This document shows, piece after piece, positions 7,216 through 8,979 of a stretch of DNA of 64,000 nucleotides; within the stretch, counting starts at the first letter, position 1; each line of letters opens with the position of its first letter. The DNA is taken from NCBI RefSeq assembly GCF_032062105.1, contig NW_026926086.1, positions 62,001-126,000 on the forward strand, written 5' to 3'. A program made the position numbers and the translations under genes. The DNA is from Saccostrea cucullata. Its lineage: Eukaryota. Below the pieces are notes generated by a model, which saw nothing but the letters and a program-made list of their open reading frames with translations, did no database searches and had not been told where the DNA came from.

Positions 7216-7302
<87 letters not shown>
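7216..7302. repeat. (TA)n microsatellite, left flank of the 349-bp array
   Basis: Pure TA run. Confidence 0.95.
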
Positions 7303-7305
<3 letters not shown>

Positions 7306-7352
7306 CAGCGTTGTGAGAATTCCATCGGCATCGAAAGCAAGTTTTTTAACTT

Positions 7353-7441
7353 GCCTAGATAGCCGAGCGGTCTAACGCGCTGTTCCTATACTGCTAGGAG
7401 ACAGATTCCGTAGGTCGCGAGTTCAACCCCGGGCTGGGGCG
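7353..7441 (+). ncRNA. tRNA-derived head (tRNA-Ile(TAT)-like with intron-like insert), not a functional tRNA; further copies start at 7702, 8051, 8397, 8746
   Basis: A box TAGCCGAGCGG (7360-7370), B box GAGTTCAACCC (7419-7429); GCGCTGTTCCTATA-14 nt-ATTCCGTAGGTCGCGAGTTC resembles intron-containing tRNA-Ile(TAT); acceptor, anticodon and T stems pair poorly. Confidence 0.65.
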
Positions 7442-7690
7442 GAAGTGAGTATCCTTGTAAAAGTGAATTTCTCTGTGCTTTCTATATTAATATTCCTTCA
7501 CTTAGGGCAGTTATATTAGTTTAAGAGTTGTTGTAATTTGTGCTTTATAAATAAAATTAATTTCATCACACCATGTATTGGTAACAATCCTCTAAAAACT
7601 AATGTCCAAATAACTGTATCTCACTTCCATTCTCAATGACCGTGTAGTGTAGGGCAGCGTTGTGAGAATTCCATCGGCATCGAAAGCAAG

Positions 7691-7696
7691 TTTTTT
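7691..7696 (+). terminator. Putative Pol III terminator T6, one per unit (also 7342, 8040, 8386, 8735)
   Basis: Only run of four or more T on the + strand of the unit; lies 5 nt before the next tRNA-like head. Confidence 0.55.
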
Positions 7697-8935
7697 AACT
7701 TGCCTAGATAGCCGAGCGGTCTAACGCGCTGTTCCTATACTGCTAGGAGACAGATTCCGTAGGTCGCGAGTTCAACCCCGGGCTGGGGCGGAAGTGAGTA
7801 TCCTTGTAAAAGTGAATTTCTCTGTGCTTTCTATATTAATATTTCTTCACTTAGGGCAGCTATATTAGTTTAAGAGTTGTTGTAATTTGTGCTTTATAAA
7901 TAAATTTAATTTCATCTCAACATGTATTGGTAACGATCCTATAAAAACTTATGTCCAAATAACTTTATATCACTTCCATTCTCGATGACCGTGTAGTGTA
8001 GGGCAGCGTTGTGAGAATTCCATCGGCATCGAAAGCAAGTTTTTTAACTTGCCTAGATAGTCGAGCGGTCTAACGCGCTGTTCCTATACTGCTAGGAGAC
8101 AGATTCCGTAGGTCGCGAGTTCAACCCCGGGCTGGGGCGGAAGTGAGTATCCTTGTAAAAGTGAATTTCTCTGTGCTTTCTATATTAATATTCCTTCACT
8201 TAGGGCAGTTATATTAGTTTAAGAGTTGTAATTTGTGCTTTATAAATAAAATTAATTTCATCACACCATGTATTGGTAACAATCCTCTAAAAACTAATGT
8301 CCAAATAACTGTATCTCACTTCCATTCTCAATGACCGTGTAGTGTAGGGCAGCGTTGTGAGAATTCCATCGGCATCGAAAGCAAGTTTTTTAACTTGCCT
8401 AGATAGCCGAGCGGTCTAACGCGCTGTTCCTATACTGCTAGGAGACAGATTCCGTAGGTCGCGAGTTCAACCCCGGGCTGGGGCGGAAGTGAGTATCCTT
8501 GTAAAAGTGAATTTCTCTGTGCTTTCTATATTAATATTCCTTCACTTAGGGCAGTTATATTAGTTTAAGAGTTGTTGTAATTTGTGCTTTATAAATAAAA
8601 TTAATTTCATCACACCATGTATTGGTAACAATCCTCTAAAAACTAATGTCCAAATAACTGTATCTCACTTCCATTCTCAATGACCGTGTAGTGTAGGGCA
8701 GCGTTGTGAGAATTCCATCGGCATCGAAAGCAAGTTTTTTAACTTGCCTAGATAGCCGAGCGGTCTAACGCGCTGTTCCTATACTGCTAGGAGACAGATT
8801 CCGTAGGTCGCGAGTTCAACCCCGGGCTGGGGCGGAAGTGAGTATCCTTGTAAAAGTGAATTTCTCTGTGCTTTCTATATTAATATTCCTTCACTTAGGG
8901 CAGTTATATTAGTTTAAGAGTTGTTGTAATTTGTG

Positions 8936-8938
<3 letters not shown>

Positions 8939-8979
<41 letters not shown>
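8939..8979. repeat. (TA)n microsatellite, right flank of the array
   Basis: Pure TA run. Confidence 0.95.

Follow-up and report, generated by a model that had tools for sequence, protein, structure and literature searches.

We examined a tandem array of a non-coding 349-bp repeat that lies at positions 7301–8946 of a 64,000-nt stretch of the Saccostrea cucullata genome (contig NW_026926086.1; the whole stretch is referred to as the window). Its ends, its units and its relatives elsewhere in the genome suggest that the array probably arose as a single insertion of a retroelement that is non-coding and non-autonomous and that a young Penelope-like element (PLE) in this genome mobilises in trans.

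Tandem Repeats Finder (TRF) assigned the array a period of 349 bp, 4.7 copies and 97% matches, and a majority unit was computed for the repeat. The array is bordered by simple repeats on both sides: an (AT)43 microsatellite at 7216–7302 (TRF and sequence) is the target tract adjoining its 5′ end, and a (TA)20 run at 8939–8979 (TRF), either a tail or a target tract, is found at its 3′ end. The inserted sequence itself (7301–8942, plus strand) opens with a 5′-truncated unit (unit positions 303–349), continues with four units at 7348–7696, 7697–8045, 8046–8391 (with a 3-bp deletion) and 8392–8740, and closes with a partial unit at 8741–8942 (unit positions 1–202). Its true 3′ terminus is the motif GTGCTTTATA (end motif 2; 8933–8942, plus strand), which also terminates the autonomous PLE. 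An internal copy of this motif is present at 7540–7549 (plus strand; unit 193–202), preceded at 7475–7486 (plus strand; unit 128–139) by end motif 1, GTGCTTTCTATA, which is internal here and at which many arrays elsewhere have their 3′ terminus. No open reading frame (ORF) of at least 40 aa was found in the array body; a scan for bacterial-type promoters and terminators was empty and was judged irrelevant.

A second family with the same terminal motif turned out to be the 3′ untranslated region (UTR) of a PLE. The single ORF of this element encodes a reverse transcriptase (RT) domain (Pfam RVT_1, E 1.7e-10) together with a GIY-YIG endonuclease domain at the C terminus (E 5e-9), and its translation contains a DKG motif, a CX4CxxC linker and cysteines inside GIY-YIG. 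By the motifs of PMC8557442 alone, it would be a canonical C-terminal endonuclease-positive (EN+) element of the Neptune/Nematis type, not of the Hydra or Naiad type. At least 102 copies share 96–100% amino-acid identity (scored among 4355 candidates), with open frames of up to about 932–947 aa, arranged in head-to-tail tandems with a period of ~3.84 kb and in many head-to-head inverted pairs. The PLE 3′ end reads ...AGTGCTTTATATA(TA)n, and the terminal GTGCTTT(A/C)TATA followed by (TA)n is common to the 349-bp family and this element with RT and GIY-YIG domains; no sequence other than the 3′ terminus was found in common between the unit and the sampled PLE parts. In a census of the flanks of TA runs, about 15% were termini of either the 349-bp family or the PLE; other TA-flanking families end differently, and GTGCTTT was found in none of the ~85 other sampled TA flanks.

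PLEs with a CX2-5CxxC linker prefer (TA)n, are strongly 5′ truncated and build partial tandems, beside which an inverted, truncated copy is often found, and non-autonomous PLEs occur as multicopy head-to-tail insertions whose 3′ ends are in common with those of the autonomous partner; the origin of the partial tandems and inverted copies is described as an open question (PMC8557442, Craig et al.). The 349-bp family displays the structural hallmarks of a non-autonomous PLE: a shared 3′ end, 5′ truncation, tandems, inverted copies and a (TA)n bias. Copies of the autonomous element are built in the same way. A 2026 preprint argues that animal retrozymes are themselves non-autonomous PLEs (bioRxiv 10.64898/2026.07.22.740005).

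Three further arrangements of the PLE termini were observed. Many PLE 3′ ends (loci L037, L042, L043, L049 and L064, and the right flank of L016) continue for another 85 nt and then finish a second time in AGTGCTTTATATA and (TA)n; this stretch is either the "tail" extension known from PLEs or a mini-passenger with the same end motif. At L045, L051, L058 and L064, very short palindromes consist of the last 30–50 nt of the PLE 3′ end with differing inner junctions; they mimic miniature inverted-repeat transposable elements (MITEs) with terminal inverted repeats and look like extreme 5′-truncated snap-back insertions. On contigs C10794, C44 and C1884 (L016, L040), 349-bp arrays and PLE copies lie in common TA tracts, tail-to-tail or serially, which suggests that TA tails left by earlier insertions serve again as targets.

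A search of the genome (1.17 Gb) returned at least 206 matches to the repeat at 95–100% identity on dozens of contigs (40 of 910 candidates scored). A pattern count gave about 567 heads of the younger subfamily (subfamily A), and a second subfamily is 92–95% identical. As judged from these identities, the family is young and multi-locus, comprising hundreds of arrays that are 92–100% identical, and is not a local satellite. Arrays elsewhere hold 1–7 or more units. We mapped the unit on 24 independent insertions, 15 of which were picked by similarity with their ends disregarded (the end-blind sample) and the others by motif. Beyond the TA runs, the 44 flanks of these insertions are unrelated across loci, with only PLE ends and a 166-bp satellite recurring; the arrays are therefore not the inner part of a larger element. 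The insertion at L021 offers a proxy for an empty site: an array of 1.9 units is located inside a 10–12-nt TA run of a monomer of the 166-bp satellite, its flanks intact and the neighbouring monomers uninserted, and the inserted array is now bordered by TA stretches of 15 nt (5′) and about 45 nt (3′). Arrays thus arrive as blocks, bringing or creating a TA tail.

The two ends of the insertions differ sharply. In the end-blind sample, 19 of 21 outer 3′ ends were at GTGCTTTCTATA or GTGCTTTATA sites (unit ~140 or 202), followed by (TA)n, and the motif with seven TA occurs 1252 times in the genome versus 5 times for a reversed control. No two of nine one-armed arrays began at the same unit position, the 5′ end adjoined a TA run in seven or eight of these arrays, and several array 5′ ends include the T run of the unit junction. 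Genome-wide pattern counts of 5′ ends beside TA runs gave 5 loci at unit ~1, 5 at a control position (~80) and 1 at ~207, and thus no 5′-end class at unit position 1 or 207. As the 5′ ends are unenriched at both candidate phases, the template shows no discrete 5′ end there. An apparent clustering of 5′ ends near the T run (5 of about 36) did not hold up in the same counts. Most motif-picked insertions possess an inverted, 5′-truncated second arm, in which case both outer ends are 3′ ends. Such head-to-head arms are frequent, with arm lengths and inner junctions that vary at every locus, and many copies are one-armed. Near-equal junction phases of the arms were seen in a first sample and failed in a second.

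The distribution of variants bears on the template. In at least seven arrays, private variants are present in every unit (e.g., 104g+262c, 167a, 207g+260a, 198g+272c), and the length of the T run is uniform within each array and ranges from T5 to T8 between arrays, so that an array looks as though it had descended from one unit. At L020, both arms carry the private variant 69t, each in its second unit counted from the centre. The multi-unit state therefore preceded the copying of the arm, and the arm is a snap-back copy. In the window array, the unit at 7697–8045 contains a foreign variant block (unit positions 148–288) whose edges are compatible with several unit phases. Private variants, mirrored arms, free 5′ ends and read-through of the T run together favour reverse transcription around a unit-length, endless template as the probable source of the arrays.

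An origin at the DNA level would require no dedicated RT: a SINE-like (short interspersed nuclear element) or satellite sequence would grow by unequal crossing-over, replication fold-back or circle capture at fragile (TA)n. Long TA tracts are indeed recombination-prone, the TATA of both end motifs could provide microhomology for joining, and tandem and palindromic SINE structures of bivalves have been ascribed to unequal recombination (PMC11481361). We nevertheless consider such an origin quite improbable, since the insertions are strongly polar, with fixed 3′ and free 5′ ends, and other TA-rich sites of the unit are unused as ends. The end motif is, moreover, common to a reverse-transcribing element with like behaviour, and the same pattern recurs at hundreds of independent loci. 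The block insertion at L021 entered a TA run of 10–12 nt, not a long fragile tract, and the private variant mirrored in the L020 arms places the multi-unit state before arm formation.

Two-armed copies also resemble long inverted terminal repeats with the same motif next to TA, and the short palindromes made of the PLE 3′ end are MITE-like, as would be expected of a DNA transposon: a foldback element whose inverted termini are built of repeats, a MITE, or a Helitron or Helentron with an internal array. Satellites of bivalves are often located inside Helentron-like elements. Against this origin, which we regard as very improbable, stand the many one-armed copies, the locus-specific arm lengths and inner junctions, and the absence of shared outer flanking modules; the family resembling a "terminal inverted repeat" proved to be the 3′ UTR of the element with RT and GIY-YIG domains, and no transposase was seen. 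Copy number, tandem state and flanks, which a preliminary description of the window had put forward for checking, show short arrays at many loci, with unrelated flanks and no shared transposon modules among the mapped insertions.

Each unit of the repeat begins with a module derived from tRNA-Leu (7353–7440 in the first full unit, plus strand), as identified by alignment with tRNA-Leu genes of the same genome; these reference genes were located by a D-arm pattern and then confirmed by ARAGORN. The module contains an A box, TAGCCGAGCGG, at 7360–7370 (10/11 to consensus) and a B box, AGTTCAACCCC, at 7420–7430 (9/11 to consensus), with an A–B distance of 49 nt. ARAGORN made no call on the head, and no Rfam tRNA model matched it at E up to 10; the head is therefore tRNA-derived yet not tRNA-folded. 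An alternative parent, tRNA-Ser, aligned poorly, and tRNA-Leu fits. By its sequence, the module would be a relic of a SINE-like ancestor, and it may or may not still serve as an RNA polymerase III (Pol III) promoter.

The preliminary description had noted the 349-bp tandem array, the A and B boxes of each unit and a single T run of six (T6) per unit, 5 nt before the tRNA-like head, all of which we confirmed: a scan of all units for T runs of four or more located exactly one per unit (7342–7347, 7691–7696, 8040–8045, 8386–8391 and 8735–8740). The description set this single run against "many TTT" in the unit, which did not hold, as only six TTT runs are present besides T6. By the binomial distribution, extension of no more than one run in seven has a probability of 0.30. 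The supposed scarcity of T4+ runs relative to shuffled sequence was likewise not borne out: dinucleotide-preserving shuffles of the unit gave a mean of 2.4 such runs, with P(<=1) = 0.24. A single T4+ run per unit is thus within chance expectation (P about 0.24–0.30) and not significant.

From these features it had been proposed that the unit equals one Pol III transcript, running from the A after one T6 to the next T6 and concatenated by template jumping or end-to-end circularisation, so that Pol III alone sets the ends. Several observations are in line with this model: both boxes, A and B, are intact and of tRNA-Leu origin, each of the 54 junctions examined retains a run of four or more T, the predicted panhandle of the monomer juxtaposes its ends and would favour a 5′-to-3′ jump, and units within an array are identical. 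The ends of the insertions, however, do not agree with it. No array terminus lies at the T6/AACTT boundary (0 of 21 3′ ends in the end-blind sample), and discrete full-length copies from the Pol III start were not seen, the proposed start being unenriched among 5′ ends (5 loci, against 5 at the control position). Several 5′ ends contain the T run, so templates read through it. Pol III-terminated ends should also shorten the junctions, yet 38 of the 54 junctions, from subfamilies that differ by 6–8%, still have T6, and some have T7 or T8; the low number of T4+ runs adds no significant support. We therefore judge the Pol III-bounded monomer unlikely.

The T run has another place in the predicted structure of the RNA. 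A 37-bp imperfect hairpin spans the unit junction (7640–7747, plus strand) with T6 (7691–7696) as its loop, formed by the unit tail (297–345), which repeats the first 48 nt of the head in inverted and diverged form and pairs with unit positions 1–48. An RNAalifold analysis of 12 copies, including an old copy in the window, had 96% of cells paired and 2 compensatory pairs. Folding energies were −53 kcal/mol for the sense hairpin (z −7.0) and −39 kcal/mol for the antisense, and the advantage of ~14 kcal/mol, owing to G-U pairs, holds in both subfamilies; in these models it points to selection on a sense RNA. The whole monomer is predicted to adopt a rod-like fold (z −4.6). T6 would serve mainly as the loop of a hairpin in the sense-strand RNA by which the unit ends are brought together, and as a hairpin loop the T run would have a role independent of Pol III termination. 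The hairpin may also be the trace of an old snap-back at the 5′ end of an RNA. Both this loop and the location of the array between two (TA)n tracts, ending at a defined motif, go beyond what had previously been described for this locus.

Retrozymes rely on hammerhead ribozymes, and we looked for such a motif. Neither strand of the array contains the hammerhead core CTGANGA or an Rfam ribozyme at E up to 10, in agreement with the absence of a hammerhead core in the preliminary description. Canonical C-terminal EN+ PLE clades are characterised by a hammerhead in the pseudo-LTR (LTR, long terminal repeat); the PLE of this genome gave no Rfam ribozyme or hammerhead match at E up to 1 at three loci (ORF, 3′ UTR and flanks; the 5′ end lay outside the sample). 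Of the earlier proposal of a ribozyme-less, retrozyme-like replicon, the tandem non-coding organisation and the lack of a ribozyme stand, joined now by the PLE link, whereas ends set by Pol III are not supported; similarly, a head-to-tail concatemer generated via circular RNA or template jumping fits endless-template copying, but not with full Pol III transcripts as its monomers. We tentatively consider the family a possible ribozyme-free counterpart of retrozymes, in which the RNA would be circularised or endlessly re-used, its ends joined by the 37-bp sense hairpin, and copied in a rolling manner by the PLE RT at TA nicks. Perhaps host tRNA enzymes process the RNA via the tRNA-derived module, which would then replace the hammerhead.

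For mobilisation by the PLE, the following sequence of events may be proposed. The GIY-YIG endonuclease of the PLE would nick a TA run, and the TA 3′-OH would anneal to the UAUA after GUGCUUU(C) in the element RNA, so that RNA carrying GUGCUUUAUA would be the priming template for the PLE RT. The enzyme would then copy a unit-length template without an effective end, which may be either a circle of RNA or an RNA slightly exceeding one unit that is re-entered through strand transfer guided by homology, and one round of copying would yield several identical units. Synthesis would halt at a random point or snap back on the new cDNA, the latter producing an inverted arm, and the far end would be joined to the TA tract, often at a TATA within the unit.

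Several points weigh against mobilisation of the array by this PLE. The sample is small, ~24 insertions, of which 15 were selected because they contain full units. Beyond the last 10–12 nt, the satellite and the PLE are only weakly similar at their 3′ ends (42 nt at 71%, E 0.21), and the pairing with this particular PLE would rest on that 10–12-nt motif and shared behaviour. Target-site duplications are masked by the TA runs, homogenisation at the DNA level could also yield array-wide private variants, and neither a ribozyme nor any other known way of making circular RNA was found.

The window contains one other copy of the family, an old copy of 1.3 units at 11053–11482 (plus strand; 74% and 65% identity), which starts at unit position 39. 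It has kept a T5 and the junction hairpin, contains further internal T runs, and is flanked by no TA run today. Its only two near relatives, both on contig C21944, resemble segmental duplicates. Right after the (TA)20 tail of the array, a 79-bp dispersed repeat (8982–9060) has at least 25 other copies in the genome at 93–99% identity, and the segment at 9069–10832 is paralogous to two segments of C21944 (93.5% and 88–90% identity). These paralogues (L032, L033) were considered as a possible empty site and rejected, being collinear only from position 9069 onward, to the right of the array. The segments at 58964–59371, 60218–61048 and 62118–62709 comprise five copies of a 166-bp satellite, flanked on either side by an AT-rich array of 21–23-bp units, the two arrays being mutually reverse-complementary; this satellite is the same one that hosts the insertion in L021 and flanks L063. 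At 14487–15391, arrays of a 21–22-bp unit with the palindrome GGCGGCCGCC are present in both orientations. ARAGORN also called a tRNA-Ser(AGA) gene at 45540–45633 (minus strand), which at 94 nt is long for a serine tRNA. The window includes a masked stretch of 285 N.

Among known elements, the 349-bp family is close to the metazoan non-LTR (non-long terminal repeat) retrozymes, namely Schistosoma SM-alpha, newt satellite 2 and the mussel and coral retrozymes, in having non-coding units of a few hundred nt, short scattered arrays and a link to PLEs; its unit falls within the roughly 170–400 nt of their tandem units, and a rod-like predicted RNA and signs of unit-length, endless-template copying are found in both. 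Those retrozymes bear a hammerhead, whereas the 349-bp unit and its sampled PLE partner have no Rfam ribozyme. In further contrast to them, the family carries a tRNA-Leu-derived module with Pol III boxes. The non-autonomous PLEs, such as MRC1 of Chlamydomonas (Chlamys clade) and short Penelope copies of butterflies, similarly have no ORF, the 3′ end of an autonomous PLE, head-to-tail multicopy organisation and microsatellite targeting (PMC8557442). Compared with the MRC1 type, the 349-bp family has a partner from among the canonical PLEs, with its endonuclease at the C terminus and a linker of the form CX4CxxC (Neptune/Nematis-like by motifs); no more than about 10–12 nt of the 3′ end are in common, and the body derives from a tRNA and not from a PLE.

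The family also recalls tRNA-derived SINEs, including the tandem-like and palindromic ones of bivalves (PMC11481361), by its A/B-box head, borrowed 3′ end, simple-repeat tail and tandem or palindromic copies. It differs from them in that the inferred partner is a PLE and not a long interspersed nuclear element (LINE), in lacking a full-length single-copy class and a discrete 5′ end, and in a unit that holds an inverted copy of its own head. The plant Cassandra elements, miniature terminal-repeat retrotransposons (TRIMs) with a Pol III 5S promoter in their LTRs (PMC7215508), are likewise small non-coding retroelements with a Pol III-type module and tandem arrays, but they possess LTRs, a primer-binding site and a polypurine tract and depend on LTR-retrotransposon enzymes, none of which applies to the 349-bp family.

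Tandem and palindromic SINEs of bivalves, non-autonomous PLEs and retrozymes are thus already known, and we found no description of a tRNA-derived element mobilised by a PLE in the literature searched. As far as the searchable literature shows, a tRNA-Leu-headed, ribozyme-less, TA-targeted tandem passenger of a PLE would be a new variant. Animal retrozymes and PLEs are thought to need hammerhead ribozymes for unit-length, possibly circular, templates; here, a very young and abundant PLE and its putative passenger, both without a detectable ribozyme, form the same tandem and inverted insertions at TA runs. If the family is indeed a ribozyme-free counterpart of retrozymes, it would be the first tRNA-headed (SINE-type) parasite of a PLE, and the tandem and inverted architecture of PLEs would come from the enzyme and the topology of the template, not from self-cleaving ribozymes. 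The pair makes the dispensability of ribozymes, the circularity of the template and the feeding of a PLE by Pol III testable in one genome.

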